Positions 1 to 60,259 of a stretch of DNA of 64,000 bases are shown piece by piece. The notes beneath the pieces were generated by a model, which did not search any database, had not been told where the DNA came from, and saw only the letters and a program-made list of their open reading frames with translations. The stretch's first letter is position 1, and each line of letters opens with the position of its first letter. Source of the stretch: Rebecca billardiae RCC1528. Its lineage: Eukaryota > Protista > Haptophyta. The translations under genes and the position numbers were made by a program. The DNA lies in the NCBI GenBank assembly GCA_965240325.2, contig OZ251228.1, positions 2,728,001 to 2,792,000 on the forward strand. Reading direction: 5' to 3'.

Positions 1-718
1 ACTTTGGGCTCACCACGTTGGCCATGCCGGCCAGCTTGTGCGTGCCGCACCGGCTGGCGCGCGCGTCGCCCGGCATGCCGAAGGAAGGCCTCTTGGTGCA
101 GCCGGTGTGATCACACTTTGGGCTCACCACGTCGACCATGCCGGCCAGCTTGTGCGTAGCGCACCGGCTGGCGCGCGCGTCGCCCGGCATGCCGAACGAG
201 GGCCCCGTGGTGCAGCCGGCGTGATCACACTTGGGGTGCTGCAAGTCGACCATGCCGGCCAGCTTGTGCGTGCCGCACCGGCTGGCGCGCGCGTCGCCCG
301 GCATGCCGAACGAAGGCCACTTGGTGCAGCCCGTGTGATCACACTTTGGGCTCACGATGTCGACCATGCCGGCCAGCTTGTGCGTAGCGCACCGGCTGGC
401 GCGCGCGTCGCCCAGCATGCCGAACGAAGGCTGCTTGGTGCAGCCGGTGTGATCGCACTTGCGGTTCATCACGTCGACCATGCCGACCAGCTTGTGCGTA
501 GCGCACCGGCTGGCGCGCGCGTCGCCCGGCATGCCGAATGAAGGCCGCGTGGTGCAGCCAGCGTGATCACACTTGGGGTGTATCACGTCGACCATGCCGG
601 CCAGCTTGTGCGCAGCGCACCGGCTGGCGCGCGCGTCGCCCGGCATGCCGAAGTGAGGCACCTTGGAGCAGTCAGTGTGATCGCACTTTGGGCTCACGAT
701 GTCGACCATGCCGTCCAT
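1..718 (-). CDS. EsV-1-7-type Cys-rich tandem-repeat protein, locus A (runs off the window start; >=6 repeats)
   Basis: Manual minus-strand translation from ATG 718/709: MVDIVSPKCDHTDCSKVPHFGMPGDARASRCAAHKLAG..., 114-bp units, no stop to position 1. Variable dipeptides KV,TR,KQ,KW,TG,KR. Confidence 0.8.
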   Translation of the reverse strand, partial: MDGMVDIVSPKCDHTDCSKVPHFGMPGDARASRCAAHKLAGMVDVIHPKCDHAGCTTRPSFGMPGDARASRCATHKLVGMVDVMNRKCDHTGCTKQPSFGMLGDARASRCATHKLAGMVDIVSPKCDHTGCTKWPSFGMPGDARASRCGTHKLAGMVDLQHPKCDHAGCTTGPSFGMPGDARASRCATHKLAGMVDVVSPKCDHTGCTKRPSFGMPGDARASRCGTHKLAGMANVVSPK

Positions 719-893
719 CCTGTGCGTACAGTGTATTTGTTTTAAAATATACCATTCAGGCGGGCATTGCCGGGTTGCACCCGGCAATGCTGCATTCACC
801 CCGGTCCTACCGGAATGCAGGGCTCGCCCCGCTGGCCTACAGCTCTGTGACCAGTCAGCGCCGCGCGCCACATAACAGGCCACCACGACTTCA

Positions 894-2510
894 TGGCCCG
901 CGGTGCAGGGCGGAGCGCGCAGCGTGGAGCCCGCACCAGCGGGCCCGAACCACGTTTCAAAAAGATCTTTGATCAAGAAAAAAGGGACGGGGGGCGATTT
1001 TTAGGGCTGGCGGAGACCGAGTTTCGAGTTTTTGAGATCGCATAGAGAGGTCTATTAGGCCGAAAATAAGCGCGTCCAGCTCATTCCCTTAAGTAAAGTG
1101 CGATCTGGACGTCAGCTGGACGTGACATTAACGTAACGGTTCGTTACGAGCGCGATTTTGTGGGTAGACTCTCGTTCATGTGTGATAGTTTGCCTCCGCC
1201 TTGATGAATATGAACTTGGCTTCGCGGCGGTTGGTATCTAGAGTCTAAAACCCGCAAGCCTTATTGAAAATACCCGCGCAGCTATTCGTTGCCAGCCCAT
1301 TCCATAGTCACTGACTTACCGAGCTGGCGAGCTCAAAACCTGCCGTCGTCGCAAGGACGACGTGCTGTGCAGGTTTCTTCTGCTGGGGTGGCGAGCGAGC
1401 CTCGACGACTCTTGGTTGGTCCGCAAGGGGGCGCTCGATGGGCAGGTGCGCGTGGCAAGTGCCGAGTGGCGCCTGGAGCGCGCGTCTGCGGCGGGTCCCG
1501 ACGGCCGTCGACATCGCGTTCGTGCCCGCTCACTAGTCACTCCGCACGCCCCTGCCGCGCCCTGTCGATGCCTGCGCGGCCGGCCGGCGCGCGGCCGCGC
1601 CGCCGCCGCCGCAGCCGCCGCCCTGTGTTCGGGCTCTCGCAAGCTCGGGGGCAGCGGCGCATGATGCCGGACTGATCGATCTCGGAGTCTCCGACTTCAC
1701 CACACGCCCCCCTTGCCATGCCTCTCCGCCAGGGTCTCCCAGAACTCTTCTTCAGAGCAGGCGCAAGTCGAACTCGGAACTGGCCGCGGCCCCGCGCGCC
1801 GTCGGCTCCCCGTGGCTGTCAGCTCCGCGTGGCCTGGGCGCCTGGCGTGCCCAGAGCTGGCCGTGCCTCTGCGACGCGTGCCGAGCCTGACCGAGGTGTG
1901 TCACCCCGTGCACGCGCGGCGCGCGCAAGCACCGGTGCTGCATGGCTGCTCGCACCGTGCTCCCTGGCTCGCGGTCAGTCAGCTCGGCCGCGTGGTGCCT
2001 GGTGTGCACGTAGAGTCGCGCTCATGCGTCGCTCACGCCTCGCGCCCGCCTGTCGGCCGTCGCGCAGGCGCGCAGGTCGAACCCTACTGACCTGCAGATC
2101 ATCTACTCCTGCGCTGCTGGCGTCGCGGCGACGACGGTCAGCGGCAGGCCCGAACGAACGGTCGAATCCGCGCGGTCCCGCGCCGTCCGGCTCCCTGGCT
2201 GTCAGTCAGCTCCGCCGGTGGCCTGGCGTGCAAGAGTCGCGCTCGTGCGTCGATCACGCCGAGTCGCATCCGCCTGTCGGCCGTCGCGCACGCGCAGGGG
2301 GTCAGGTAAGGGCCGTCTGTGATGAGGGCAGCTCGGCCGACGACCGACATCCACACTCGGCGCACGCCGGCGGCGGCGCGGCGCTGGGGCGGCGCGCCGC
2401 TGGATGGAGTCTAGTTACACGTGTACGGGACGACTGCGACGGAGGGTGCACCGCCACCGCGGGCCCCGAACTACGTTCGTTCTACGGAAAAGGACCGCGG
2501 AACGCGGTCA
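894..2510 (+). mobile_element. Non-autonomous Helitron2/Helentron-like element, copy 1 (alpha-type interior)
   Basis: Starts TGGCCCGCGGTG after A. Its inverted complement CACCGCGGGCC lies about 45 bp before the 3' end. Terminal hairpin GACCGCG-GAA-CGCGGTC, then A|T. Five copies in the window. Confidence 0.7.
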
Positions 2511-2514
2511 TCAA

Positions 2515-6333: not shown

Positions 6334-6376
<43 letters not shown>

Positions 6377-8657: not shown

Positions 8658-10019
8658 TCACCGGGAGCGAGCATCAGCCCGGACCCTCCTTGCCTTCACC
8701 ACAGCGCGGGCTGCGTCGCCACCTGCGTTGCCACGCAGATGCCGCTCGTCCAAGGGCAGGGCACCATCATTGACCACCCCATCGTCAACCGAACGGAGTG
8801 TGCCATCTGGTGAGCGCCACTGGACGATGCTGACTGCGACCAGCGGCGGGGGCGGGGGCAGCTGCGGCGCAGCGTCCGAACCGGCCGCAGTGCGGCTGCT
8901 GCGTTTTCGCCGTCGCTTCGCGGCGCGCGTGCCCTGGTCGCCCGCGCCATGCTCCAGCCTGCGCTTGGGGACGGCGAGCCGACTGCTTACCATGCCGGCC
9001 AGCTTGTGCGTAGCGCAACGGCTGGCGCGCGCGTCGCCCGGCATGCCGAACGAAGGCCACGTGGTGCAGCCCGCGTGATGACACTTGCGGGTTACCACGT
9101 CAACCATGCCGGCCAGCTTGTGTGTAGCGCACCGGCTAGCCCGCGCGTCGCCAGGCATGCGGAACGAAGGCTGCTTGGTGCAGCCCGCGTGATCACACTT
9201 GCGGTTCACCACGTCGACCATGCCGGCCAGCTTGTGCGCACCGCAGCGGCTGGCGCGCGCGTCGCCCGGCATGCCGAACGAAGGCACCTTGGTGCAGCCG
9301 GCGTGACCACACTTGCGGTTGACCAAGTCGACCATGCCGGCCAGCTTGTGCGTGGCGCATCGGCTGGCGCGCGCGTTGCCCGGCATGCCGAACGAAGGCC
9401 GCTTGATGCAACTGACGTGATCACACGTGGGGCTCACCGTGTTGACCATGCCGGCCAGCTTGTGCGCAGCGCACCGGCTGGCGCGCGCGTCGCCCGCCAT
9501 GCCGAACGCAGGCCGCGTGGTGCAGCCAGCGTGATCACACTTGGGGTGCTGCAAGTCGACCATGCCATCCAGCTTGTGCGTAGCGCATCGGCGGGCGCGC
9601 GCGTTGCCCGGCATGCCGAACGAAGGCCCCTTGGTGCAGCCCGCGTGATCACACTTGGGGCTCCTCACGTCGACCATGCCGGCCAGCTTGTGCGTGGCAC
9701 ACCGGCTGGCGCGCGCGTCACCCGGCATGCCGAACGAAGGCTGCTTGGTGCAGCCGGTGTGATCACACTTGCGGCTCACCACGTCGACCATGCCGGCCAG
9801 CTTGTGCGTGGCGCAACGGCTGGCGCGCGCGTCGCCCGGCATGCCGAACGAAGGCTTCTTGGTGCAGCCCGCGTGATCACACTTTGGGCTCTTCAAGTTG
9901 ATCATGCCAGCCAGCTTGTGCGGAGCGCAGCGGCTGGCGCGCGCGTCGCCTGGCATGCCGAAATCAGGCCGGGTGGTGCAGCCGGCGTGATCACACTTGG
10001 GGTTCCTCACGTCGACCAT
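8658..10019 (-). CDS. EsV-1-7-type tandem-repeat protein, locus B (9 repeats + basic NLS-like tail)
   Basis: ORF 8658..10220; first array Met at 10019, true start uncertain. Dipeptides TR,KK,KQ,KG,TR,KR,KV,KQ,TW. Tail PKRRLEHGAGDQGTRAAKRRRKR. Confidence 0.85.
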   Translation of the reverse strand: MVDVRNPKCDHAGCTTRPDFGMPGDARASRCAPHKLAGMINLKSPKCDHAGCTKKPSFGMPGDARASRCATHKLAGMVDVVSRKCDHTGCTKQPSFGMPGDARASRCATHKLAGMVDVRSPKCDHAGCTKGPSFGMPGNARARRCATHKLDGMVDLQHPKCDHAGCTTRPAFGMAGDARASRCAAHKLAGMVNTVSPTCDHVSCIKRPSFGMPGNARASRCATHKLAGMVDLVNRKCGHAGCTKVPSFGMPGDARASRCGAHKLAGMVDVVNRKCDHAGCTKQPSFRMPGDARASRCATHKLAGMVDVVTRKCHHAGCTTWPSFGMPGDARASRCATHKLAGMVSSRLAVPKRRLEHGAGDQGTRAAKRRRKRSSRTAAGSDAAPQLPPPPPLVAVSIVQWRSPDGTLRSVDDGVVNDGALPLDERHLRGNAGGDAARAVVKARRVRADARSR

Positions 10020-10198
10020 GCCGGCCAGCTTGGGGAGGCCGAGATCGAGGGCGTGAAAGGCCCCGCTGCTGATTGGCGGTCCGGAGTCCGGGAGCACTGA
10101 TGAACTGGGTCCGGAGCCAGCGCTCAGTCGTTCGCTCACTCGAGTCTCGAGTTGCCGACCAACGGTCTTCACCTCGACCGACCAAGCTCGTGCGCGAG

Positions 10199-11084
10199 AT
10201 GACGACGCTCGACGCTCCATTCGCGTCGCCGCCCGGCCTCGGAGCGCAGAACACCGTGGCCGGGCTTAAGCGCAAGGCGGACGACATCTTTTCATCGGCT
10301 CTCACCCTCGGCGACGGCTCAGTGCTCGACCTGGATCAGCTGCCAGCCAACGATGAGTCGGTCACGCTCGCCATGCTGAGCTCGTGCCGCGATCGCATCC
10401 GTGCACTGCAGGCAGCCGCCACCTCGAAAGTGCAGAAGGCGGGCCCCGAGGCTGCAACTCCTGCAGGGCCGGCTGCCGCCGCGAAGAAGCCCGGCGCGTC
10501 TGGGCCCGACCACGTGACGATGGCGCGCAAACGGCTGGCTGCCTCCTTCAAGACCTCTCTCAAGGGCGTGCGCTTTTACAACCACTGGTTCTCCTCCGGG
10601 GGCACGACGAAGGAGATCAAGTTCAACGACACGCTGACGGAGAGCGAGCTCCGCGCGCTCTTCCTCGACGGCCCGGACGGCGCGCGAGGCATGCTCATCC
10701 AGCCCACGCCGGAGAACAACCCAAAGTCGAACGTGCGCAGCTGCGCACACTTGCCCGTGCCCACGGCCCTGCTGCGCTGCGCATTGTGGCGGTACCCAGC
10801 CAGTCTTGCCCGTCAAAGCGTTCACTTCACACCATACCGTGCGCTCATCGCGCGTCCCATGCGGGCCGTCGGTGCAGGTCTTCATCATCGAGCTCGAGGG
10901 CGACGCGCTCGTCAAGATCATCGGGCTGAAGGACCCGAAGGGCGAGCTGTGGTCCGAGGGCGGCATCCAGCGGGGCAAGGGCCGCAAGCTTGGCAGCTGC
11001 CCGCTCAAGGTACACTCCGCGACGGCGAAGTGGTCCGGTGGCGTGGGCAAGCTCATGCTTGCCGTGCGCACGGAGAACCTTTAG
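10199..11084 (+). CDS. Unknown protein of about 246 aa divergently paired with array B (exons 10199-10732, 10878-11084)
   Basis: ATG 10199. A GT..AG intron at 10733-10877 joins ...PENNPKSN to VFIIELEGDALVK...RTENL* in frame. Has a KRK motif. Second, degraded copy at 57472-58134. Confidence 0.7.
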
Positions 11085-11388: not shown

Positions 11389-12399
11389 CTAGTCGTTAGT
11401 CTTAGCAGCGGCCAGCACTGGCAGCAGGCCCAGGTAGCGTTCAGTCACGTGGTGGTCTGCGTACACCATCAGCTGCACGCAAACGGCCACGGGCCGCGCA
11501 GACGCAGCCAACGCACACGCAGCCACAACGCCCTCTCCGTCGGAGCATGCGCCGGCCGCGCGCCTTCTCGTGAGCGCCCCACGTTCAATCGCATTGGCAG
11601 CGGATTCGAGCTCGACGCGCAGGAGCGCACACGCGACAAAGAAATCGGCAGCAGAGTCGTCGTGAGCATGATGGCGGTCGGCGCAGTCGGCGTCGCCGGC
11701 AGCCGTGCTGCCGACTCCGATGAGCACCGCGCCTGGTAGCAGGCTGCCTCCCTCGTCCGCGCAGGTTTGCCAGCCTGCATCTGGCTCGCCGTGGGCCAAC
11801 GCGCGCACCTCTGCGGGTGGCAGCACGCGCTCGCGCAGGAGGCGCGCGTAGTGCAGCTGTGGCAGCCGGATGACCCGACGGCGCGCCCAGCGGCCCACGA
11901 TCTGCGCAGACTGCTGGCAGATGCGCCATGGGTGCTCGAGCGGCCAGTCGCAGCCGGGCGGCATGCGCGCGAACGCGGGCAGGCCGCAGCCAAGGGGCGG
12001 GTCCGCGTGCTGCAGCCGCAGGGCAGCGCGCTCGACGAGCACGACGAGGTGCGGCTGGTTCGCGCCGTCCGTCTCCATCGTCGCGACGGCGGCGGCAGCT
12101 GCGGCCTCCCCGCCCGCGGGCCGCGCCGCCCGTGGCACTGCCAACTCGAGCGGAGAAGCCTGCCCCTCCCTGCCGAGCGCCACGCCGCTGCCCAGGCCGA
12201 AGAAGGCGGCGAGCTCAGCCGCACTGGGCGGGTGCGCGTCGGCCAGGCTTCGGCACACGGGCGCAGCGGCGGTGGCATCGGCACCGGGCTGCAGCGGAGA
12301 GTCCGCGCCGACCGCGAGCGCGCCGTCATCGCAGCCGTCAGCATGGCCGCCGCGTGGGTGAGCGCCGTCGGCCTCTGCGCGCTCGGCCTGGCCAGGACA

Positions 12400-12430
<31 letters not shown>

Positions 12431-14127
12431 TGCTGCTCGCGCTCGATCAGCGCGGCGAAGAAGCCGCCGCAGTCCGCGGCGCTCGGCAGCACACGGATGC
12501 ACCGCGTGAGGTCGAGCGCACCGCCGTCGGCGTCGTCACCGCCAGCGCTCGCGCTCGCGCGCGGAGCAAACATGGTGGGCTGCAGCGCGCCGCGCTCGAC
12601 GGCGCCGCTGGCCTCCTCGTCCGCCAGCTCGGCGGCAGAGCGGAGCATGTGCGGGCGGGCCTCGCAGTACCCGGGCGTAGGCACGCCCCACGAGCGCAGC
12701 CCCGGGTGGCACGCCCTCGCGGCAGCCTCGGAGAGCACCTCCTGGGCCGCGGGCACCAGCCGCACGCGCAGCGGCCGCCCTCGCACGTCTGCGCCGGCGC
12801 GCGCCCGGCTGAGCGCCGCGTGCACCACCGCCTCGTTCTCGATCGGGTTGAGCGAGCACGTGGAGTAGGCGAGCCGGCCGCCCGGGCGCAGGAGCCGGAG
12901 TGCGCGCTGCAGGATGGCCAGCTGCGTCGCGTGGTTCGCGAGCGCCGGGCGGACGGACCAGCGCTCCCACTTGCGCGCGTTCTTGCGCAGCGTGCCGTCG
13001 CCCGAGCACGGCGCGTCCACGAGCACGCGCTCGAAGCGCAGCGCGGCGGGCGGGGCGGGCGGGGCGGCGCGAGGGATGGCGGGCGGGACGAAGGTGCGCG
13101 CGTCGGAGCACATCATCAGCACGCGCGTCGCGCCGGGCTGCGACCACAGCCGGCGCAGCGCGCGCTCTGCGCGGGGCCGCTCGAGATCATTCGCCACCAG
13201 CACGCCGGCAGCGGGCGGCGCAGCCGCGGCCGTGGCCGCGGCCGTGGCGGGCGCGGCGTTGGCCGAGGCAGAGGCCACCATGAGGTCGAGCAGCTGGCTC
13301 GTCTTGGAGCCAGGCGCGCAGCAGAGATCGAGCACGGCGTGCCCGGGCCGTATCGGCGCGAGCAGGCACGCTGGCAGCATCGACGCCACTTCCTGCACGC
13401 ACAGCTCACCGCAGTTGGCGAGACGGCTGAGCACCGCGCCCAGCGAGCCTGCCGAGCTGGCCGCGGCCTCGGGCGCGGGCGCAGCCGCCGGGGCGTCGGC
13501 GGAGCGCTCAGCGTGGACCGCCGTGGGGGCTTGCGCCACGTACAGCCCACTGCCATCCGAGGGCCACGGCGAGCTGAGCAGCCGGACGCCACCGGCCGCA
13601 CCGGCCTCGCGCACGGCGGCGTCCAGCTCGGCGCGCGTGCGCGCGAGCCGTGGCGACGCGCGATTCAAGCGCACGGAGAGCGGGAGCGGCCGGCGGAGGT
13701 GCGCGCACACGTCGTCCCACTCCGCAGGGCCGCACAGCTGCTGCGCTGCGTAGTACGCCGCGAAGGTTCTCGCCGCCTCCGTGCCCACTACAGCACCGGT
13801 CTCACCGTCGCGCGTGGCGCCACCCACTTCGGCGCTCGCCTGCAGCCCAATGTCCAGCACCATCCGCCGGCTGCCGCCGCTCGAGACGTCGCTCTCGCTC
13901 GGTATGAGCGTCACAACGTCGCCGGCGAGCACGACGCGATGACCCTGGCAGGGCGCATCGTTCACGAGCACGCGCCCCTGCTCGCACGCGCGGAAGGCGC
14001 CGGTGCGCGAGTCGCCGTGCGGCAGGAGGTACTCGCGGAAGGCGTGCGCGACGAAGCGCTGCACGCGTTCACCCGCGTCGGCGACGCTCACGACTTCGCA
14101 CGCGCCCCGAGCCGTCACAAAGTCCAT
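11389..14127 (-). CDS. NOL1/NOP2/Sun-family RNA (cytosine-5) methyltransferase, NSUN2/Trm4-like, with a possible N-terminal S4-like domain
   Basis: Motifs QEVASMLP, VLDLCCAPGSKT, ANDL, FERVLVDAPCSGDGTLRK, YSTCSLNPIENEAVV, GGFFAALI; both catalytic Cys (PC, TC) present. N-terminal GRVLVND...VLAGDVV resembles S4. Confidence 0.9.
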
Positions 14128-14249
14128 CGCGCCAATCACTTCTGTCGCGACGAGACGGCCGGCACGTCGCCGCCCATCGTGCGACGACGCATATCCGTAG
14201 GCTCCGTGGAAATCGTTGGTCGTTTTTCGGGCGGAGGGCGGGAACGAGC

Positions 14250-18531: not shown

Positions 18532-18970
18532 AAGAGCAGCCTCGACGGCCGCAGGCCGGAGGACGGTGGAGCAGAGCAGCCTCGACGGCCGCGGGCCGGA
18601 GGACGGTGGAGCAGAGCAGCCTCGACGGCCGCGGGCCGGAGGACGGTGGAGCAGAGCAGCCTCGACGGCCGCGGGCCGGAGGACGGTGGAGCAGAGCAGC
18701 CTCGACGGCCGCTGGCCGGAGGACGGTGGAGCAGAGCAGCCTCGACGGCCGCGGGCCGGAGGACGGTGGAGCAGAGCAGCCTCGACGGCCGCTGGCCGGA
18801 GGACGGTGGAGCAGAGCAGCCTCGACGGCCGCGGGCCGGAGGACGGTGGAGCAGAGCAGCCTCGCCGGCCACTGGCCGGAGGACGGTGGAGCCGAGCAGC
18901 CTCGACGGCCGCGGGCCGGAGGACGGTGGAGCAGAGCAGCCTCGACGGCCGCTGGCCGGAGGACGATGGA
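18532..18970. repeat. 40-bp tandem repeat, 11 near-perfect units
   Basis: CTCGACGGCC recurs every 40 bp from 18541 to 18941. Confidence 0.95.
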
Positions 18971-36379: not shown

Positions 36380-36424
36380 GATCAACACCTTTGGTTGGGT
36401 TGACGGCGACGAAGAACGAAGAAC

Positions 36425-43497: not shown

Positions 43498-44267
43498 GTT
43501 ACTACTAGCGCCATCACCGCCAACTGCGCCCCATCGGGTGATCGCCTTCGGATCGTGACTCAGTCACAGACACAGTGATCGCGGCCGAATTGAGCCCGCC
43601 ATTTTTGTGAGAGATATGAGGTTTCAGAGCAGCAAAAATAAATTGTAATTAATTAATCCGTTTCTGGCGGCCTCTATTAATGGATGACGAATTCCAATAG
43701 TATGGGGGTACAGGGTCCCCAACAATTGTTCGGGCCACACTGATTTTTGCTGACTACGGCTGCTGACGATGAGATGGGCCAGAGGCTCTCAGTAGCGCCA
43801 TAGACCTTACTCCTCGGCGGATGACCGGACAGGAAGTGGTTGCAGCGAGCGGCGCGCTCTGCGCGTGGCCAGGGCTGGCTTGGGTGTACAGCTCAACCGA
43901 CTAGCGGTTGGCTCTGAACAGGTCCATGGAGCCCCCGTGAGTGGCATGCATGCTGAAATTCGTATCTGGCGCACGGTTGCATTTGACGGCGGGCGGGTTG
44001 GTGTGCGCACTGGTGGGCCTCCAGCGTTCGCTGCGGGTAATCTCGCCTGCCTGAGCTGTGTGCGTCTCTTATTCTTAGTAAACTGTAGTGGCGCCGAGTG
44101 TAGCCCATGCCTGCACGGCCAGAGCCGAACGACTGGCTGTGCAGCAGCTGTGCAAGAGAGGTGTGCAACTGCCTGGGCTGGACCGATCGGGCCGTATATG
44201 CTCCTGGTGTAGCGCTACGCGCGGGCTCGCCCAGGGCTGTCGAGCGCATGTCGCATAGTCACCGACC

Positions 44268-46031: not shown

Positions 46032-46836
46032 CACAGACACGGTGACAATGACAATGTGAGCGCGCACGATGCTGCTGAGGCCGCTGAGCGGCTGAGTCAG
46101 GCTGGCCGCACTTTCAGATGCTGTGAGTGTGACCTGACATGCTGCATGAGTAGTGACGAACTATACGTCTACTTTGGGAATTAATGCGCGGGGGGCCCGG
46201 CGGCAGGGATTGGCGGGGATCTCGGCACCACTCCACCAGGCCCCGCGCGGATCACGAACTGATGCGGCAGCATGCGCACCCTCCGTCCCTCGCCCCATTG
46301 GGAGAGGGGAGGTAGCAGGTAGTCCTGACGGTCTCAACCCGGTACAGGCTTGCCAGCTGAGTCCGCTTCGCGTGCCTAGTATGCCGGCTAGTGACGCTGT
46401 CTACCGTCGTAGTGAAAGTGATCCGGTCCCGGCGTCACTTTGAGCTACGCAGTCCGCTGTCGACTGGCAAGCAGGTCTGCAGGAGACTTAATTTTTAAAA
46501 ATCCGCGCTACCATCGGCGACGGCTTCATGGGCGGTGACGGTTGGCGGGCGTCGATCTCGCCTGCCTGAGCTGTGTCAAGGGCCGTGCGCAACGCTCCGT
46601 TATCCGAAGCTGATGAGCTCCGACTGAGTGACGCCCGTCGTCGGCCATAGTCTGGTTCCCTAGTTACTTCCCTTGGTCTGATGATGAGTCGGATCCCGGG
46701 TAGATCCCGTGCACTTGATTACTGTAGAGGCTTTTCGTCAGCAGGAGAAAAGCGCCGCGCTTCTTTCTTCTGCGCTTGCACCGCGAACGATTCTGGTCGG
46801 GCGCCCTCCGCCGACCGGGACGGCCTCGCTTTCCTG

Positions 46837-49800
46837 ATGTTGGGGCGCGCGCTCGCGGCGTCGCTCGCCCTGCTCGGGCTCGCGCCTTGGGCGGCGCGGT
46901 GTGCCGAGGTGAGCTTCTGCCTCGATGCATGCGGCAGCCGCTTCTTCGAGCGTGAAGCCGTCGGCGACGGCACGTGCGACGACGGCGAGGGCGGCAAGTG
47001 CACGTTTGGGACGGACTGCGCCGACTGCGGCGCGCGCACGTACGACACGGACGAGTTTTTGCCCTCGCTCGGCGTGGAGTACGAGATCGTGTCTCGGAAG
47101 GCCCTCGGCGAGAAGGAGGTGTGCGACGACACGTGCGACTTCCCCAAGGACGGCTTCTGCGACGACGGGCGGCCGGGCGTGCCGAACGCGTTTGCGGTCG
47201 CCGCGTGCGACTACGGCACGGACTGCTCGGACTGCGGCACGGGGACGGTGACGGAGTACCGCGAGGAGAAGCACACGGTGGCCTCGTGCGCGCCGACCAC
47301 GCCGCGCGCCAAGAAGAAGTGGGCCTTCCTCCTCTACCAGCAGGCGGACAACAACCTGGAGGGCTTTGCGCTCTCGGACGTGGGCGAGGAGATCACCAAG
47401 CTGGCGGACACGTCCGACGTGCACATCGTCGTGCTGATGGACCGCGCGAGCAAGAAGGTGCGCGGCTCGACGGACCGGCCGCTGCCCGTGTCCGTGCGCG
47501 ACTGCAAGGGCGGCACGCCCAAGACCACCTTCACGGAGAGCTGGCTGCTCGAGTGGGTGCCCGCGGCGGCCGCGGACGAGCGCGCGCCGGCCGTGGAGGG
47601 CCACTACAAGCTGCTGGCGGCGAAGGAGCTGGACATGGACGACATGCGCACGGTCTCGGGGTTCTTCACGTGGGCCCTCGAGATGTACCCCTCCGACCAC
47701 CTCCTCGTCGACATGTGGGACCACGGCGCCGGCCTCGCCGGGCACGGCGGCGACGGCTCGCACTCGCACGCGATGCTGGGCGTGGCCGACCTCTTCGTGG
47801 CGCTGCAGGCGGCGACGCGCGCGAGCGGGCGCGCGATCGACATCATCGGGTTCGACGCGTGCCTGATGTCGGAGTTCTCCGTGCTGACGATGCTGCGCCC
47901 CCTCGCGCGCTCCTTCCTCGTCTCCGAGGACCTCGAGCCCGGCCACGGCTGGCAGTACGCCGCGATCGACGTGCGCGCGGACGTGCCTGGGCTGGGCCGC
48001 TCGATCATCGACGGCTTCATGGCGCACTCGGACGAGAGCCCGCGCACGCTGGCGCACGTGGACGGCAGGCAGTTCGACGCGTTCTCCGACGCGTTCGGCG
48101 CGCTCATCGACTGCCTCACCGCCGCCGTCGAGTCGAACGACGCCGCGGTCGTGCACCTGCTCGCGACCGCGCGCGCGCAGTCGCGCGCGCTCGAGGGCGT
48201 GTACGAGGGGCCGGACGAGCACGACTGGTTCTTCGTCGACCTGGGCGACTGGCTGGACGAGCTGGTGATGGGCACGGACGACGACGTGTGCCGCGCGGTG
48301 CACCTCAAGGCCGCCGCCGCGCTCCGCGCGTACAGCCTCACCTTCCTCGCCGCGCGCGTCTCCGACCCGGTGCGGTACACAGGCATGAGCCTGTACTACC
48401 CCAAGGTGGCGCAGTACGGCGCCAACAAGGACGCGCGCGACTCGTTCCGGGGGCAGCTGCTGCGCATCGCGGACGAGGTGGACAGCCTGACGGGCGCGCG
48501 GAACGGCGCGACGCTGCGCAAGTGGACCGCCTTCCTCGCCGCGCTCTACGGCACCACGCACGCGCGCACCTCCTCCTACCTCTCGGCCGGCACCACGTCG
48601 ATCTGCGGCGCCGTCGACGTGCCGGCGGACGAGAAGTTCGAGGTGGGGCCCGGCATGGTGGCGGCGCTGAGCGGCGCGGTGGGCGGGCTGGTGTCGAAGC
48701 TCGAGCTGCGCGCGCCCGTGCCCAGCGCGGCGGTCGCGTGCTTCGGCGCGTACGGCGAGCTGCGCGCGCGCGAGCACGACGCGCAGCCCTTTGCGGGCGC
48801 GCTCGGCGGCTTTGTCGTGCCGGGCGCGCTCAGCGACGCGCGCTCGGCCGCGCAGGCCAAGCTCACGTGGCTCGGGCGGCTGTGGCACGTGGTGGGCGGC
48901 GGGCTGAGCGAGACGCCGCACATCTCGGAGGAGTCGGTGGTGGGCTCGAAGGTCGTGCTCAACCTGCCGTGCACCTACCGCGCGCGGCACAACGCGCGGC
49001 GGCAGAGCGCGCGCATGGTCGTCACGATCGAGCACGGCGCGGCCGGCCGCTCGCGCGGCGCGCACGCGCACGCGCCGCGCGCCTCGCGGCTGCGGCAGCA
49101 CATGCACGCCAACTTCTCGCTGTACGACGCGCAGAACGCGGCGATCGCGCCCGCGCTCGGCGCGCTCGTCCACTTCAAGCGCGCCCTCGCCGCCTCGCGC
49201 GACACCAGCTGGCCGATGCGCACCACCCTCGTCGACTCGGCGTCCGCGTTCGACTTTGCGCGCGTGCGCTCGTGGCACGTGGAGTATGACTCGGTCGGGC
49301 ACGCGGCGCCGTCGGCGCACGGCGCGCCGCGCGTGCTGCTGCTGCAGCTGGCGATCGCGGACGTGCTGAGCAAGCAGGCCGGCGCCGCGGTCGGCGTCAA
49401 CCTGCACACCGGCGCGTGGGCGCCGCTGGCCAACTGCACGAGCCTCGCGTGCGCGCCTGAGAAGCTGCTGGCAGCCGCGCCGCCCGCGCCGCCGCTCCCG
49501 CCCGCGCCGCCGCCCGCGCCGCCGCCGTCGCCGCCGGGCGAGCGGCACGAGCCGCCGCCGAGCCCGCCGAGCCCGCCGAGCCCCGCGCCCGCGCCCTCGG
49601 CCTGCGCGGCCGACGACCTCTTCGAGGTGCGCGTCGAGGTGGACGTGGGCTCCAACTTTGCGGACGAGACCTCGTGGATGCTCTTCCTGCTGGACGCGCG
49701 GCAGCAGCCCGCGTGGGCGACCGGGCTGTACAGGGGCGAGCCCGCGGTGAGCATCGGGCTGGGCGGCTCGTTCCGACCCGCGCTCAACTTCGAGGCGCCG

Positions 49801-50169
49801 CTCTCGCACATGTTCTGCCTCTCGCGCGGCAACTACCTCTTCGTCATCCGCGACTCGTTCCAGGACGGGTGCGCGCGCAGGCCAGCGCGCGCACAGAGCA
49901 GCCAGCCGGCGCGGCGCGCCGAGTGGGGCCGCGCGTGCGCGCGCGCGCGCACGCGCGGGTTGCCGGGCCGGTGCGCGCGGCGCGCTCTGAGCCGCGGCGC
50001 CGCCGCCCGCCGCGCCCACGCCCCGGCCCCTTCGCGCGCGCGCAGCCTCGACCCGCCGGGCAAGTACGAGCTGTGGGTGCAAGGCATGCTGATCGCGAGC
50101 GGCGACCGGTTTGGCGCGCGCGCAGAGCACCGCTTCCACCTGGGCGAGCGGGGGTACCTGCACCCGCCC

Positions 50170-50223
<54 letters not shown>

Positions 50224-50787
50224 AGCCCGCCCGCCGTGGCCGCGCCGCCGCGCGTCGTCGACTACGTCGGCCACTGCCCCGGCCCGCGCACGCAGCTCAC
50301 CGTGCAGTTTGTGTACGACCCCTGGCCCGACGAGACGGCGTGGTCGCTGCTCGGGCCGGGCGGGCTCGAGCTGGCGGAGCGGTACGGCGGCTCGGGCAGC
50401 CACGTGTCGGTGTGCGTGGCGGACACGGTGGGCGACCATTACGTCTTCATCGTCGTGGACGGGCTCGGCGACGGCCTCGATGCGCCCGCGGGGTACAAGG
50501 TGCGCCGCGCGCGCGCGCCGCCCCGCCCCGCCGGGCGGAGAGAGGCGGGCGGGCGGGTGGGTGCGCCCCTGGCCCCGCCGCCCTCTCCCTGTGTGGCCTC
50601 ACGCCCCGCGCCCCTCGCGCCGCCCCCGCGCCTGCCGCCGCTGCCGCAGGTGTTCGCGGACGGGCTGCTGGTCGTGGAGGGAGGCGCCGGCCGCTTCGAG
50701 CAGCGGATCCACTACTTCACCACAGAGGGCGCGGTGCCGGTGCAGCCGCCGCCGCCGGCCCCGCCGAGCGGGCTGAGCGCGCCGCCG

Positions 50788-50831
<44 letters not shown>

Positions 50832-51612
50832 CGTGACGGTCGCGCCGCCGCCGCCGCCCGCCAGCCTCGGCTGCGCACCCCCGCACGCCGAGTTCGTCCT
50901 CAGGCTGCTGACCGACCAGTACCCCGAGGAGCTGAGCTGGGCGCTGCGCAGGCGCGACCACCACGCCACGCACGCGCCCGTGCTCGAGGGCGACGCCATC
51001 GACTGGGCGAGCGGGCTGTTTGCGCAGAGCGCGACGGTGGTGCAGCGCGCGTGCCTCGGACCCGGCCCGTACGCGTTCGAGCTGCGCGACGCGTTCGCGG
51101 ACGGGCTCCAGGACGGCGTGGGCGCGGGGTACACGCTCACCATCGGCAGCGCGAGCGCCACGGACACGCGCTCGAGCGGCGGCGCGGGCTTTGCGGAGGC
51201 CGAGCTCACGACGTTCAGCGTCGGCGCGGACGGCAGCGTGCGCGATGTGCGCACGGCCGCCGACCCGCCCGACGCGTCGCGCGGCGCGCGCTCGCAGTTT
51301 GGAGGCCACGCCATCGAGGCGCTGAGCCAGCGGCGCGCGCACGGCCACGCGCACCGCGCGGCCGCGCGGCTCAGGCGCGCGGTGCGCGCCAACACCTCGG
51401 CGCGGCCGGAGGCGCGCGCCGCGCCCGTGGCCCGGCAGCTGCGGCTGCTCGGCGGCGCGGCGTGCACCCTCGTGGCCGCGGCGGCCGCGGTGCTGCTCGG
51501 CGCGCGACGGCGTCGGGCGGCGATGGACCTCGCTGAGCGGCCCGCGCCCGCCGGGGCCTCGCCGGGCGAGTGCCATGCCGCCACTGTGCGCACACAACAC
51601 GCGCTCCTCTGA
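46837..51612 (+). CDS. Type-I membrane/secreted clostripain-like (peptidase C11) protein with Cys-rich N-terminal repeats, Pro-rich linkers and three repeated domains (likely introns 49869-50045, 50500-50649)
   Basis: Signal peptide MLGRALAASLALLGLAPWAA. WAFLLYQQADNNLE, WDHGAG (His), IIGFDACLMS (Cys), SEDLEPGHGWQY. Repeated D.(W/Y)P.E.(S/A)W.L...C...Y.F...D...DG domains. C-terminal hydrophobic helix followed by RRRR. Confidence 0.88.
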
Positions 51613-57161: not shown

Positions 57162-57212
57162 TAACAATAAGCTGCTTCGCGACAGTCATAACTAGTCTGC
57201 TGCTCTGTCAGT

Positions 57213-57326: not shown

Positions 57327-57371
<45 letters not shown>
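57213..57371. repeat. Interrupted (CT)n microsatellite
   Basis: Direct reading. Confidence 0.95.
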
Positions 57372-57374
<3 letters not shown>

Positions 57375-57471
57375 GCTAGGAGGCAGCTGTCTAGTGGCTG
57401 GTACTCGGCCAGCAGCAGCACACTCGGCACGCATCGGGATCGTCATATACTGTATCCGATGACGATTGGTC

Positions 57472-58134
57472 GGACCACAGCTCGCCCTTCGGGTGCGTCA
57501 GCCCGATGATCTTGACGAGCGCGTCGTCCTCGAGCTCGATGATGAAGACCTGCACCGACGGCCCGCATGGGACGCGCGATGAGCGCACGGTATGATATGA
57601 CGTGAACGCTTTGACCACTGGCTAGGTACCGCCACAATGCGCAGCGCAGCAGGGCCGTGGGCACGGGCAAGCGTGCACAGCTGCGCACGTTCGACGTTGG
57701 GTTGTTCTCTGGCGTGGGCTGGATGAGCATGCCTCGCGCGCCGTCCGGGCCGTCGAGGAAGAGCGCGCGGAGCTCGCTCTCCGTCAGCGGGTCGTTGAAC
57801 TGGATCGCCTTCGTGGTGCCCCCGGAGGAGACGCGCCGGACTTCTTCGCAGCGGCAGCCGGCCCTGCGGGAGTTGCAGCCTCGGGGCCCGCCTTCTGCAC
57901 TTTCGAGGTGGCGGCTGCCGGCAGTGCATGGATGCGCTCGCGGCACGAGCTCAGCATGGCGAGCGTGACCGACTCATCGTTGGCTGGCAGCTGATCCAGG
58001 TCGAGCACTGAGCCGTCGCCGAGGGTGAGAGCCGATGAAAAGATGTCGTCAGCCTTGCGCTTGATGAGCCCGGCCACGGTGTTCCGCGCTCCGAGGCCGG
58101 GCGGCGACGCGAATGGAGCGTCGAGCGTCATCAT
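57472..58134 (-). pseudogene. Degraded copy of the 10199-11084 partner gene, divergent from array F
   Basis: MMTLDAPFASPPGLG...; frameshifting deletion of about 90 bp; same intron; truncated after GELWS. Confidence 0.8.
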
Positions 58135-58207
58135 CTGCTCATCTCCACACGAGCGCGATCGCGCGAGCACTGTGTCTTTTGGATGACAACGAGGAGGTGA
58201 AAGACCG

Positions 58208-60259
58208 TTGGTCGGCGACTCGGAAGTCGAATGTTCGGACCCCTCTGTACGGACTCCGGACAGGCCGTCAGCGCGGCCTTTCACGCCCTCCAGCTCGGCC
58301 CCAGGCTACGCCGCGGGCGACGCGCGCGCCAGCCGGTGCGCTGCGCACACGCTGGCCGGCATGGTCGACGTGAAGAGCACCAAGTGTGATCACGCCGGCT
58401 GCACCAAGAGGCCTTGTTTCGGCATGCCAGGCGACGCGCGCGCCAGCCGGTGCGCTACGCACAAGCTGACCGGCATGGTCAACGTGGTGAGCCCCAAGTG
58501 TGATCACACTGACTGCTCCAAGGTGCCTCACTTCGGCATGCCGGGCGACGCGCGCGCCAGCCGGTGCGCTGCGCACACGCTGGCCGGCATGGTCGACGTG
58601 AAGAGCCCCAAGTGTGATTACGAGGGCTGCACCAAGCAGCCTTCGTTCGGCATGCCGGGTGACGCGCGCGCCAGCCGGTGTGCCACGCACAAGCTGGCCG
58701 GCATGGTCGACGTGAGGAGCCCCAAGTGTGATCACACCGGCTGCACCGCGCGGCCTTCCTTCGGCATGCCGGGCGACGCGCGCGCCAGCCGGTGCGCTAC
58801 GCACAAGCTGGCCGGCATGGTCAACGTGAGGAGCCTCAAGTGTGATCACACCGGCTGCACCAAGGGGCCTTTGTTCGGCATGCCGGGCGACGCGCGCCCC
58901 AGCCGGTGCGCTGCGCACAAGCTGGCCGGCATGGTCGACGTGAAGAACCCCAAGTGTGATCACGCGGGCTGCACCAAGGGGCCTTCGTTCGGCATGCCGG
59001 GCAACGCGCGCGCCCGCCGATGCGCTACGCACAAGCTGGCCGGCATGGTCGACTTGCAGCACCCCAAGTGTGATCACGTCAGTTGCATCAAGCGGCCTTC
59101 GTTCGGCATGCCAGGCGACGCGCGCGCCAGCCGGTGCGCTGAGCACAAGCTGACCGGCATGGTCAACGTGGTGAGCCCCAAGTGTGATCACGCTGGCTGC
59201 ACCACGCGGCCTTCATTCGGCATGCCGGGCGACGCGCGCGCCAGCCGGTGCGCTACGCACAAGCTGGTCGGCATGGTCGACGTGATGAGCCGCAACTGCG
59301 ATCACACCGGCTGCACCGCGCGGCCTTCCTTCGGCATGCCGGGCGACGCGCGCGCCAGCCGGTGCGCTACGCACAAGCTGGCCGGCATGGTCGACGTGAG
59401 GCACCCCAAGTGGAGGAGCCTCAAGTGTGATCACACCGGCTGCACCAAGGGGCCTTCGTTCGGCATGCCGGGCGACGCGCGCGCCAGCCGGTGCGCTACG
59501 CACACGCTGGCCGGCATGGTCGACGTGAGGCACCCCAAGTGTGATCACGCTGGCTGCACCACGCGGCCTTCATTCGGCATGCCGGGCGACGCGCGCGCCA
59601 GCCGGTGCGCTGCGCACACGCTGGCCGGCATGGTCGACATCGTGAGCCCAAAGTGTGATCACACTGACTGCTCCAAGGTGCCTCACTTCGGCATGCCAGG
59701 CGACGCACGCGCCAGCCGATGCGCTACGCACAAGCTGGCCGGCATGGTCGACGTGAGGAGCCTCAAGTGTGATCACACCGGCTGCACTAAGCATCCTTCC
59801 TTCGGCATGCCGGGCGACGCACGCGCCAGCCGATGCGCTACGCACAAGCTGGCCGGCATGGTCGACGTGAGTAGCCGCAAGTGTGATCACACCGGCTGCA
59901 CCAAGGGGCCTTCGTTTGGCATGCCGGGTGACGCGCGCGCCAGCCGGTGCGCTACGCACAAGCTGGCCGGCATGGTATGCAGTCGGCTCGCCGTCCCCAA
60001 GCGCAGGCTGGAGCATGGCACTGGTGACCAGGGCACACGTGCAGCTAAGCGACAGCACAAACGCACCAGCTGCATTGCCACCGTCTCGGACTCCGCCCCG
60101 CAGCTGCCCCAACCATCGCCGCTGCTGGCCGGGAGACTCGAGAGAGGCAACGCGGCGGATGGGCGAACGCCGCCACACGACAGTGACACAGATGATGAGT
60201 CTGACCACTGGACGGTGGCAATCGCATCTGATCTGTCGTCATCGTCTTCGGATGAGTGA
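58208..60259 (+). CDS. EsV-1-7-type tandem-repeat protein, locus F (14 repeats, NLS-like motif and acidic tail); first array Met at 58361
   Basis: Dipeptides KR,KV,KQ,AR,KG,KG,KR,TR,AR,KG,TR,KV,KH,KG. Tail PKRRLE...AAKRQHKR...DSDTDDESDHW...SSSSSDE. Confidence 0.85.
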   Translation: MVGDSEVECSDPSVRTPDRPSARPFTPSSSAPGYAAGDARASRCAAHTLAGMVDVKSTKCDHAGCTKRPCFGMPGDARASRCATHKLTGMVNVVSPKCDHTDCSKVPHFGMPGDARASRCAAHTLAGMVDVKSPKCDYEGCTKQPSFGMPGDARASRCATHKLAGMVDVRSPKCDHTGCTARPSFGMPGDARASRCATHKLAGMVNVRSLKCDHTGCTKGPLFGMPGDARPSRCAAHKLAGMVDVKNPKCDHAGCTKGPSFGMPGNARARRCATHKLAGMVDLQHPKCDHVSCIKRPSFGMPGDARASRCAEHKLTGMVNVVSPKCDHAGCTTRPSFGMPGDARASRCATHKLVGMVDVMSRNCDHTGCTARPSFGMPGDARASRCATHKLAGMVDVRHPKWRSLKCDHTGCTKGPSFGMPGDARASRCATHTLAGMVDVRHPKCDHAGCTTRPSFGMPGDARASRCAAHTLAGMVDIVSPKCDHTDCSKVPHFGMPGDARASRCATHKLAGMVDVRSLKCDHTGCTKHPSFGMPGDARASRCATHKLAGMVDVSSRKCDHTGCTKGPSFGMPGDARASRCATHKLAGMVCSRLAVPKRRLEHGTGDQGTRAAKRQHKRTSCIATVSDSAPQLPQPSPLLAGRLERGNAADGRTPPHDSDTDDESDHWTVAIASDLSSSSSDE

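Follow-up and report, generated by a model that had tools for sequence, protein, structure and literature searches.

The window analysed here, a stretch of 64,000 nucleotides from a GC-rich alga, carries six tandem arrays of a 38-residue zinc-ligand repeat that has received little study, which raise the question of what the arrays bind and whether the residues that vary from unit to unit take part in recognition. A preliminary description saw in them a modular nucleic-acid reader, an interpretation that as a whole is partly supported by the analysis below.

Six EsV-1-7 arrays in the window

A six-frame search of the window for C-x4-C-x16-C-x2-H gives exactly 55 matches, where at least 55 had been reported; every one falls within one of six arrays, which coincide with the 114-bp tandem arrays detected by TRF. 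Counted from the residue preceding the first Cys, the unit comprises 38 residues. Units follow one another directly, head to tail and with nothing between them, and none of the 55 has lost any of its four zinc ligands. The earlier assignment to the EsV-1-7 repeat is confirmed by the match of all six array reading frames to Pfam PF19114 (EsV_1_7_cys; E 2e-86 to 7e-196). The Pfam search found no other domain in these frames, including SET or KRAB effectors, and a nuclease domain was looked for in the array genes of the window and not found. No database protein is more than 56% identical, and that match spans less than half of the query. The proteins belong to neither the TALE nor the C2H2 family; from C2H2 arrays they differ in fold and in ligand spacing (Cys3-His, 38 residues).

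The same tandem unit occurs in EsV-1-7 proteins of brown and other algae, including Ectocarpus IMMEDIATE UPRIGHT, which likewise form tandem-clustered multigene families with no other Pfam domain and with links to giant viruses. The window units are much closer to one another than those of the sampled brown-algal proteins, at about 87% DNA identity compared with 63% amino-acid identity within the array of Ectocarpus P0024; their variation is also limited to about 10 positions, and units have been exchanged between loci. The six loci are best explained as members of an EsV-1-7 (PF19114) gene expansion that is large, young and specific to the lineage. Neighbouring genes in the window are cellular ones, encoding a C11 peptidase, an NSUN-type methyltransferase and a WD40 protein; dispersed repeats abound in the region, and the antisense strand of the arrays also carries long ORFs.

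Gene models

Locus B (8658–10220, minus strand; units 8973–9998) gives the clearest gene model of all, an uninterrupted ATG-to-stop ORF of 520 residues comprising a 74-residue leader, nine units and a tail with the basic cluster KRR...KRRRKR and a C-terminal ...ARRVR motif. Locus E (44268–46031, plus strand; units 44889–45800) is also an ATG ORF, of 587 residues and eight units, whose tail carries KRQRKR and the same C-terminal motif. Locus C (22538–24376, plus strand; units 22922–23947) is an open frame of nine units with a B-type tail, about 79% identical in DNA to that of B. Locus A (frame 2–1000, minus strand; units 5–688) is an open frame of six units whose C-terminal end is cut by the start of the window.

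Two loci depart from this pattern. Locus D (36404–37753, plus strand; units 36509–37534) has nine units and an E-type tail, 98.6% identical to that of E, and within its frame no ATG is found upstream of the array. Its N-terminal part, a copy of the corresponding region of E, is displaced to 33524–34018 on the plus strand (33338–34018 matches 44082–44763 at 99.4%). The two parts are kept apart by a 2.36-kb insertion (34019–36379) with terminal inverted repeats of ~270 bp (34058–34319 and 36104–36372, 92% identical) and no GT..AG ends, which is probably a DNA transposon that has split the gene. Locus F (58187–60256, plus strand; units 58382–59992) is an open frame of 14 units followed by the start of a B-type tail. 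A start codon and eight codons (MERRASSS; 58113–58136, plus strand) are common to F and B (10197–10220) and lie out of frame with the F array, which may reflect an intron or a frameshift. They belong to a larger upstream region shared by B (10197–10957) and F (57470–58136) at 94–96% identity, which includes a divergently oriented ORF. The splitting of D and the out-of-frame start of F suggest that some copies may be decaying.

The predicted array proteins are basic, with pI values of 9.1–9.7 and a net charge of +2.2 to +3.6 per unit. Clusters like that of the B tail are present in C and F, and KRQRKR is found in D as well as E; judged by eye, these clusters match the NLS consensus, so that the NLS-like tail noted previously is retained for B, C, D, E and F.

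Variable positions within the unit

Variation is sharply localised. Amino-acid entropy exceeds 1.1 bit solely at unit positions 5, 9, 10, 12, 26 and 34–38, and is zero at positions 2, 7, 11, 13, 23, 24, 27, 29, 31 and 32. This agrees with the fixed variable positions first proposed (the dipeptide before Pro, the residue after it and the linker), for which the residue lists were also correct. The mean base difference is about 4.5% over the 26 scaffold codons and about 31% over the 12 variable ones. To call the scaffold almost invariant in DNA is therefore fair but not literal, given that difference and the fact that 53 of the 55 units have distinct DNA sequences. Positions 9, 10 and 12 form 21 different triplets among these units, and there are 29 different linkers.

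The variable residues do not assort independently; mutual-information permutation tests show that they are statistically linked into unit types, such as T-D-S-K-V-H. Silent diversity at codons 5 and 12 (0.68 and 0.58, against about 0.1 elsewhere) is an outlier of the kind expected from old linked unit types. Nor is the residue alphabet small, with 323 distinct triplets among 586 units from across the family. In these 586 units position 10 is Arg or Gln in 51% of cases, and position 12 is Ser, Thr or Asn in 60%.

TAL effectors offer a parallel, being built of near-identical tandem units of 33–38 residues with fixed repeat-variable positions and carrying an NLS, which in the window proteins is NLS-like. 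The TALE unit, however, is a metal-free helical hairpin, whereas the window unit is a zinc module that contains little helix; its variable residues form linked types that extend across about 10 positions, and neither a secretion signal nor an activation domain is present in the window proteins.

Homologues show that the preference for certain positions recurs. Among 18 young arrays taken from viruses and from other organisms, there are 17 in which positions 10, 12, 36 and 37 diverge faster than a set of 18 further non-structural positions (p = 1.5e-5); the four are also ahead in 9 of 9 intermediate arrays.

Selection on the units

Purifying selection acts on the scaffold, where dN/dS is 0.25 over all pairs and 0.17–0.34 over independent closest pairs. 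These values, the ligands preserved in all 55 units, and the complete ATG-to-stop ORFs of B and E with their conserved tails leave little room for the view of the arrays as repeat DNA, decaying or selfish, that does nothing for the host and persists only because frames stay open in GC-rich repeats. The split of D by its 2.36-kb TIR element, the out-of-frame start of F, the antisense ORFs and the surrounding dispersed repeats all fit such a view, which we nevertheless regard as highly improbable.

Positive selection at the variable sites is not supported. At the hot codons dN/dS is 1.4–1.8, but p is 0.11 against local dS and significance is reached solely against pooled dS; the sites were also picked post hoc, and the values are consequently not decisive. 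In the independent viral-like contig L001 the corresponding figures are 1.08 for hot, 0.60 for other non-structural and 0.28 for structural positions. CpG decay, which the preliminary description had named as a competing explanation of the variable sites, accounts for only 29 of the 267 deviations from consensus at hot codons (about 11%).

Values of omega near 1 would suit ordinary concerted-evolution repeats, that is, selected proteins in which the variable sites are simply the least constrained surface residues of a unit amplified not long ago and encode no specificity, the proteins serving some generic purpose, for instance zinc-dependent scaffolding or the binding of chromatin or nucleic acids without specificity. 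Most residues at position 10 can be reached from CGG or GGG in a single step, the variable positions of the window are a subset of those that vary family-wide, and the wealth of triplets points the same way. Against this, eleven other positions that are free to vary across the family (3, 4, 15, 16, 18–22, 29 and 30) are nearly fixed here, while piN at the hot positions reaches 0.26–0.53; the same four positions lead in nearly all of the independent young arrays; and silent diversity is raised beside the hot sites. We consider this explanation rather unlikely.

Array turnover

The arrays change much faster than their flanks diverge. In D and E the tails and upstream regions are 98.6% and 99.4% identical, yet their units differ by 3–17 of 114 nt. 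Conversely, a block of five units is common to F (F08–F12) and E (E02–E06), with 0, 3, 6, 1 and 8 nt differences, despite the unrelated flanks of the two loci. Within E, units E01–E02 recur as E06–E07 (0 and 1 nt differences), and a 15-nt junction between F09 and F10 (59408–59422) is read as a recombination scar. Most units have their nearest neighbour in a different array, and unit order differs between all six, as the preliminary description had stated. These observations show that the arrays have been remodelled by unequal crossing-over and by non-allelic exchange of units and multi-unit blocks, and they support a minisatellite-like mode of turnover.

The arrays of PRDM9 and the KRAB C2H2 proteins likewise consist of tandem zinc modules with a DNA-homogenised scaffold and few variable residues per unit, and show minisatellite-like turnover in clustered genes. 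The window arrays resemble them in the homogenised scaffold, the restricted variation, the turnover and the clustering; they differ in being Cys3-His modules of 38 residues with no beta-beta-alpha finger, and in that their DNA binding is putative.

Homologues fused to a nuclease-fold domain

In half of the homologues that could be detected, most of them from Nucleocytoviricota, the array is followed on its C-terminal side by a restriction-endonuclease-fold domain. An invariant D...E-x-D-E-x-x-H...R-x-x-P pattern marks this domain in 51 of 120 homologues, and a Vsr-like motif is present in nine more. Its AlphaFold2 model (pLDDT 87.4, pTM 0.77) is closest, among solved structures, to the endonuclease-like protein 3hrl (DUF559-like; Z 8.0) and the catalytic domain of I-Bth0305I (Z 7.8), both matches spanning the whole target domain; Vsr (Z 6.1) and many restriction enzymes follow, and Foldseek adds the R2 endonuclease domain, Hjc and McrC. 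The fold is thus that of the I-Bth0305I (EDxHD), DUF559 and Vsr-like nucleases, although the motif reads E-x-D-E-x-x-H in the viral relatives and E-D-x-H-D in the EDxHD family, and cleavage, putative in any case, would concern the relatives only.

The association is widespread. ESM Atlas clusters with the nuclease fold are 93–100% Nucleocytoviricota, some being named 'Endonuclease family protein' with PF19114, and the nuclease family numbers 7,956 cluster representatives. Strict EsV-1-7 units are present in the N-terminal part of 71 of the best 148 newly fetched representatives, and some of the remainder have variant Cys-repeats or C2H2-like fingers there. In P0005, P0042 and the Atlas clusters the EsV-1-7 array is followed by a zinc ribbon and then by the PD-(D/E)xK nuclease. 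These viral proteins have the same unit and the same hot positions (10, 12, 36 and 37) as the window proteins, to which the relatives are 40–56% identical, and P0005 shares with them the loop motif PGDA-x-ASRCAAHKL. The window proteins differ in having no nuclease and a basic NLS-like tail in its place, and in being encoded among ordinary cellular genes. Between near-orthologous viral-like proteins the nuclease is 69–91% identical and the array 43–59%, and this faster divergence of the array also argues against unconstrained concerted-evolution repeats.

The neighbours of the nuclease fold also include two proteins with RAP domains, namely FASTKD4 and a mitoribosomal protein of Toxoplasma (Z 6.9–7.1), both of them RNA binders. 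RAP domains bind RNA and, in organellar RNA-binding proteins, are attached to helical-repeat arrays; Cys3-His ligand sets, too, occur in RNA-binding fingers. The arrays might by analogy be RNA-reading modules. The two best fold matches, however, are DNA endonucleases, the acidic and His residues of the C-terminal domain are invariant, as in active nucleases, and the window proteins end in NLS-like tails and show no organellar presequence. An RNA ligand is accordingly very unlikely.

Structure of the unit

An AlphaFold2 model of four units (pLDDT 86.5, pTM 0.53) places strands at residues 13–14, 23 and 33–34 of each unit and a helix at 25–27. The unit is a small Cys3-His module in which Cys2 and Cys7 form an N-terminal knuckle and Cys24 and His27 lie at the start of a short helix. 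With a pTM of 0.53, a rigid DNA-tracking superhelix is not predicted. The weak structural neighbours are solely zinc fingers of the knuckle-plus-helix type (LIM, GATA, RING, FYVE, the nsp13 zinc-binding domain and WRKY19), and for the unit no match reaches significance (Foldseek E > 3, VIA Z 2.1).

The LIM, RING and FYVE fingers in this list bind proteins, and the arrays could be protein-binding platforms whose tandem zinc modules, in the manner of LIM domains, expose a variable face to which peptides or proteins attach; the partners would be viral or host proteins, and the diversification would stem from a host-virus or self/non-self arms race. The family is common to algae and giant viruses, and clustered, fast-shuffling paralogues are typical of immune-type recognition families. 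Such platforms are less easily reconciled with the recurrent fusion to a DNA-type endonuclease fold in relatives that have no other candidate DNA-targeting module, with the strongly basic character of the arrays, or with the dominance of Arg/Gln and Ser/Thr/Asn at the hot positions. We judge a protein ligand to be unlikely.

Proposed function

The best reading is that the window arrays are nuclear DNA-binding arrays, a proposal to which we give about an even chance. As the window genes have no nuclease, this reading rests on the architecture of the relatives: giant-virus proteins join the same arrays to a DNA-cutting domain, and the arrays probably bind DNA for that reason. The literature searched describes the function of EsV-1-7 proteins as unknown and contains no direct evidence of DNA binding by any of them, nor any report of the hot positions or of the nuclease link.

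In the proposed model the variable residues would ring the zinc site and provide each unit with its patch of ligand contacts. Residues 9, 10 and 12 would flank the invariant Pro, position 5 would belong to the knuckle, position 26 would fall between Cys24 and His27, and linker residues 36–38 would directly precede the next knuckle. The ligand would be double-stranded DNA, of which the array may read an extended site unit by unit. In giant viruses, where the architecture is abundant, the array would serve as targeting domain for the PD-(D/E)xK endonuclease that follows it; the algal proteins would be nuclease-free nuclear derivatives, acting as sequence-directed factors, perhaps regulators or repressors of repeats and viruses, with shuffling of the arrays diversifying their specificities. 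The modular reader first suggested thus gains indirect support from the recurrent hot positions and from the place of the array at the targeting position of a nuclease, but its residues are linked and not independent, and a TALE- or PRDM9-like code of one unit to one target base would be hypothetical. Added to it here are the fast turnover of the arrays, hot positions 10, 12, 36 and 37 across the family, the nuclease-fused viral relatives, and the nuclease-free, basic window genes with their NLS-like tails.

A further likeness is to the WRKY19-type zinc finger of plants (PF24906). Residues 118–262 of WRKY19 are the top AlphaFold-DB/Swiss-Prot neighbour of the four-unit model, a weak match (E 0.09), and no protein of the window matches PF24906 at an E of 0.01 or better; PF24906 does co-occur with the viral nuclease clusters, and sub-threshold matches to it are seen in EsV-1-7 homologues.

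Array anatomy and family assignment

A six-frame scan of the window for the spacing C-x4-C-x16-C-x2-H recovers exactly 55 units, all inside the six arrays A to F and all 55 with the same spacing within a 38-residue tandem period; the corresponding 114-bp period shows 0% indels within the arrays. Array A, on the minus strand and truncated by the window start, has six units; B (also minus strand), C and D have nine each, E has eight and F has 14. The family is already known. The window proteins match the EsV-1-7 model PF19114 with scores of 284–634 bits (Pfam gathering cut-off 25), in 6–15 matched stretches per protein, and in the Pfam search of these proteins PF19114 alone passes threshold. Matches to Meis_PKNOX_N (18–27 bits, cut-off 27) are located inside the EsV-1-7 repeats and are spurious; the sole score over the cut-off, 27.5 bits on D, came without an accepted stretch.

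In brown algae, hundreds of genes encode the EsV-1-7 domain, which is present in the developmental regulator IMM; the domain's biochemical role is given as unknown in the literature searched. That literature, taken without the original 2017 paper (Macaisne et al.), makes no link to an endonuclease and mentions no hot positions for the domain.

When positions are counted from the residue before the first Cys, ten (2, 7, 11, 13, 23, 24, 27, 29, 31 and 32) show zero amino-acid variation across the 55 units, and per-codon entropy exceeds 1.1 bit solely at positions 5, 9, 10, 12, 26 and 34–38. The mean base difference is ∼4.5% in the 26 scaffold codons and ∼31% in the 12 variable codons. Statistically, the variable positions are tied to one another as unit types; the window units comprise 27 kinds of 'head' and 29 kinds of linker, and the order of units is unique to each array. 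The preliminary description, of at least 55 units in six arrays with fixed variable positions and no common order, is accurate.

Selection on the repeat unit

The scaffold is under purifying selection, with piN/piS of 0.25 overall and 0.17–0.34 in independent closest pairs. For the six codons that vary most, the ratio is 1.4–1.8, which is significant with pooled dS (p = 0.01 to 0.0008) and non-significant with local dS (p = 0.11). Because these sites were chosen after inspection, the ratios show that the hot codons evolve at or above the neutral rate and do not prove positive selection. CpG transitions account for 29 of the 267 deviations at the six codons, and silent CpG sites of the scaffold are seldom changed, which rules out CpG decay as the source of the hypervariability. 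In the per-codon dN/dS and entropy check proposed earlier, the localisation of the variation has held and CpG decay is excluded; omega above 1 is not significant with local dS. That the arrays themselves are in decay we regard as highly improbable.

Unexpectedly, silent diversity is raised at the fourfold sites of two codons, 5 (0.68) and 12 (0.58), versus ∼0.1 elsewhere. Long-lived unit types that stay separate beside a homogenised scaffold would give this pattern; the cause may also be a local mutational one.

Turnover of the arrays

For most units the nearest DNA neighbour belongs to another array. Arrays D and E are very recent duplicates, with tails 98.6% identical and upstream regions 99.4% identical, yet their units at equal positions differ at 3–17 of 114 nt, and the best cross-matches are still 3–11 nt apart. 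The second to sixth units of E (E02–E06) are collinear with F08–F12, with 0, 3, 6, 1 and 8 differences, despite the unrelated leaders and tails of the two genes, and E01–E02 are present again as E06–E07. A 15-nt (5-aa) insertion at 59408–59422, between F09 and F10, where TRF breaks the F array, reads as two joined linkers and is probably the scar of an unequal recombination. The near-identical flanks of D and E around divergent units, the block common to E and F, and the scar in F together show that the arrays are remodelled by unequal and ectopic exchange, far more quickly than point mutation alters their flanks.

Predicted structure of the unit

An AlphaFold2 model of four units, computed from 41 aligned four-unit segments, has a pLDDT of 86.5 and a pTM of 0.53. 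Each modelled unit comprises strands at 13–14, 23 and 33–34 and a short helix at 25–27. The model suggests a knuckle (C2, C7) combined with a helix start (C24, H27), treble-clef-like by topology; the order of elements in a treble clef (knuckle, β-hairpin, helix with the last two ligands in its first turn) fits the model, and the weak structural neighbours are of that class. The Cys3-His set is invariant across the units, and is a putative zinc-binding site. No significant structural neighbour of the four-unit model is found in the PDB (Foldseek E > 3; VIA Z 2.1) or among Swiss-Prot models. The weak neighbours are zinc fingers (LIM, GATA, RING, FYVE and the nsp13 ZBD), and the best Swiss-Prot model match, residues 118–262 of WRKY19, is non-significant.

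Along the chain, positions 36–38 and 1 precede the knuckle, 5 lies inside it, 9–12 follow it and 26 falls between the other two ligands. From this order we infer that the variable residues would surround the zinc site.

Comparison with known modular systems

The loci had been proposed as a TALE/PRDM9-like programmable binding system. They are PRDM9/KZFP-like in behaviour and superficially TALE-like, but lack the fold and domains by which either group is defined. TAL effectors are built from a 33–35-aa helical repeat that winds as a superhelix round DNA, whereas the window unit is predicted as short strands and a 3-residue helix round a Cys3-His site. TAL effectors have two adjacent, backbone-independent variable residues for one base each; fixed variable positions exist in the window units too, but number ∼10 and are linked into types. 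PRDM9 and the KRAB proteins use a C2H2 ββα finger of ∼28 aa; the ligands here are Cys3-His with other spacing, and no zf-C2H2 match is found in the window proteins at E ≤ 0.01. Nor do these proteins, in which PF19114 alone passes threshold, have the PR/SET or KRAB effector. What they do share with such arrays is turnover much faster than the divergence of the flanks and the focusing of variation on few residues per unit, a likeness of behaviour and not of membership. A simple TALE-like code in the arrays is possible but unsupported, and we think it improbable.

The same positions vary across the family

Homologues retrieved with E as query are merely 27–56% identical and come from brown algae, Coccomyxa, Nannochloropsis, Effrenium and many metagenomic contigs; peptide patterns found no close relatives in IMG/VR. 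About 22 positions vary across the family, and the window arrays vary at a subset of these. Within each homologue array we compared the fast positions of the window units (10, 12, 36 and 37) with the 18 other non-structural positions. They are ahead in 17 of 18 young arrays, defined by an intra-array identity of at least 55% (0.65 versus 0.41, p = 1.5e-5), and in all nine intermediate arrays; in old arrays all positions are saturated.

The closest relative lies on a metagenome contig, L001, where, over 14 units in three genes, piN/piS is 1.08 for the hot positions, compared with 0.60 for the remaining non-structural ones and 0.28 for those that are structural. This JGI contig, a 12.8-kb stretch with a GC content of 0.66, high like that of the window, is gene-dense and encodes a ribonucleotide reductase small subunit together with three EsV-1-7 proteins, one nuclease-fused (P0005) and two array-only; it looks like a giant-virus fragment.

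Across 586 units, half of the residues at position 10 are Arg or Gln, and 60% of those at position 12 are Ser, Thr or Asn. A small residue alphabet is nevertheless absent, since the same units contain 323 different triplets at positions 9, 10 and 12. The main rival to a recognition function is that constraint is relaxed on a few surface residues that encode no specificity. A ratio near 1 at the hot positions speaks for it, and the lead of the same four positions in 17 of 18 young arrays against it; we judge it unlikely. Should the recognition hypothesis fail, the loci would still illustrate clearly how concerted evolution can go with a local relaxation of constraint.

Nuclease fusions in relatives

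In 51 of 120 homologues the array is followed by a C-terminal domain with an invariant D...E-x-D-E-x-x-H...R-x-x-P signature (type I). Nine others (five from Effrenium, P0011 and three metagenomic) carry instead a Vsr-like E-F-x-G-x-x-x-H-G ... W-E motif (type II). Neither domain is found in the named brown-algal, Coccomyxa or Nannochloropsis homologues. The type II domain is probably Vsr-like, to judge from its motif, the name given by one source and a weak PHROGs 'endonuclease' match for the type II protein P0011 alone (E 0.017).

Searches of Pfam, NCBIfam and PDB sequences gave no usable match for the C-terminal domains of the homologues, and the type I domain is recognised by fold comparison alone. 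Its AlphaFold2 model (pLDDT 87.4, pTM 0.77) is closest among solved structures to the DUF559-like endonuclease 3hrl (Z 8.0), followed by the catalytic domain of the homing endonuclease I-Bth0305I (Z 7.8); further matches include Vsr (Z 6.1) and many restriction enzymes, and Foldseek adds the R2 endonuclease domain, Hjc and McrC. Among ESM Atlas clusters of this fold, which are 93–100% Nucleocytoviricota, several contain PF19114 and two bear the name 'Endonuclease family protein'. A profile search with the nuclease core returned 7,956 cluster representatives. Strict EsV-1-7 units lie N-terminal to the nuclease in 71 of the best 148 newly fetched representatives; some others have N-terminal variant Cys-repeats or C2H2-like fingers that are sub-threshold in Pfam. 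In a group of near-orthologous five-unit proteins the nuclease is 69–91% identical and the array just 43–59%; for the pair P0046/P0093 the values are 91% and 59%. In four representatives of the nuclease family (P0253, P0257, P0258 and P0378) the same core stands behind a ∼17–18-aa Cys-rich repeat, C-E-H-x-x-x-K-S-x-C-x-x-C-G-G-S, which matched no Pfam model (P0253 searched) and may be another targeting module in giant viruses.

The window proteins differ from these NCLDV array-endonuclease proteins in having no C-terminal PD-(D/E)xK domain with D...E-x-D-E-x-x-H. No nuclease is found elsewhere in the window either, the domain profile having matched, in six frames, only its own residual EsV-1-7 unit (profile positions 3–46). 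The arrays here are basic (pI 9.1–9.7). Their tails are of two types, B/C/F and D/E, both with basic clusters resembling an NLS on visual inspection and a hydrophobic LV-x-x-S-[IV]-V stretch; a C-terminal ARRV motif is present in tails B to E, as ARRVR in B, D and E.

In the viral proteins the array sits where homing endonucleases hold their DNA-binding modules, and nothing else there could aim the enzyme; the array would therefore serve as the DNA-targeting module of the nuclease. The algal forms, nuclease-free, basic and NLS-tailed, would bind DNA in the nucleus, and shuffling would diversify their specificity. We give this reading an even chance. Binding of protein by the arrays, with LIM, RING and FYVE domains among the weak neighbours of the unit and a nuclease as the attested fusion partner, seems rather unlikely, and binding of RNA very unlikely.

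A bolder form of the DNA-targeting reading, improbable in our estimation, is that EsV-1-7 units are an undeciphered modular DNA-recognition system with a readable and re-engineerable code. Each 38-aa module would read a fixed short DNA step through x-P-x (positions 10 and 12) and linker residues 36–38; giant viruses would aim homing-type endonucleases with such arrays, and domestication in algae would have turned the arrays into nuclear factors, in large families that shuffle fast and are comparable in function to KRAB-ZFP/PRDM9.

The family-wide fast positions, the widespread fusion to a homing-type endonuclease fold in giant viruses and the PRDM9-like turnover in this alga make a concrete, testable hypothesis of a DNA-targeting array, each unit of which would hold its specificity in four or five named residues. 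If true, it would account for the aiming of selfish nucleases by viruses, indicate how algae gained nuclear regulators of a new kind from them, and could add a new modular DNA-binding scaffold.

Gene models and genomic surroundings

Loci B (8658–10220, minus strand) and E (44268–46031) are complete ATG-to-stop ORFs. The N-terminal region of D equals that of E at 99.4% identity, but an insertion in the coding region (34019–36379) has moved it 2.36 kb away, on the upstream side. This insertion has terminal inverted repeats of ∼270 bp (92% identical), lacks GT..AG ends and is missing from the 99%-identical paralogue E; internal palindromes and GC-rich 18-bp tandem repeats occur in its interior. 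F has the promoter region and first eight codons of B, but this start is not in the reading frame of its array. Head-to-head with B and F lies a divergent ORF (10193–10957, plus strand, and 57470–58136, minus strand; 94–96% DNA identity) that has no Pfam match; a ∼90-bp deletion changes the frame of the F copy. Long ORFs also run antisense across arrays (8949–10100, plus strand, 383 aa; 58268–59191, minus strand, 307 aa); these are a by-product of GC-rich in-frame repeats and do not indicate genes.

The window is GC-rich throughout (0.61–0.76 per 2 kb), and this evenness, together with the cellular genes between the arrays, rules out a viral origin of the region. These genes include an RsmB/NSUN-type methyltransferase (11389–14139, minus strand), whose best named relative is from the green alga Cymbomonas (43%), a WD40 protein, and a clostripain-family (C11) peptidase encoded by a single 1,643-aa ORF (46681–51612) with its domain at residues 219–485; outside that domain the ORF is very GC-rich, with runs of CGC triplets.

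Dispersed repeats are numerous between the arrays. Two inverted repeat pairs are perfect (100%), 3904–4333/4526–4955 (430 bp) and 38411–38953/40342–40884 (543 bp), and represent very recent inverted duplications or TIR elements, unless they are an artefact of the assembly. A dense, GC-rich, partly palindromic repeat of 43–44 bp fills 14248–16850 and 19152–19340, with higher-order periods of 121, 163 and 193 bp and a satellite- or MITE-like look. At 18533–18971 a 40-bp unit is repeated 11 times with 96% identity, within overlapping long ORFs of both strands.
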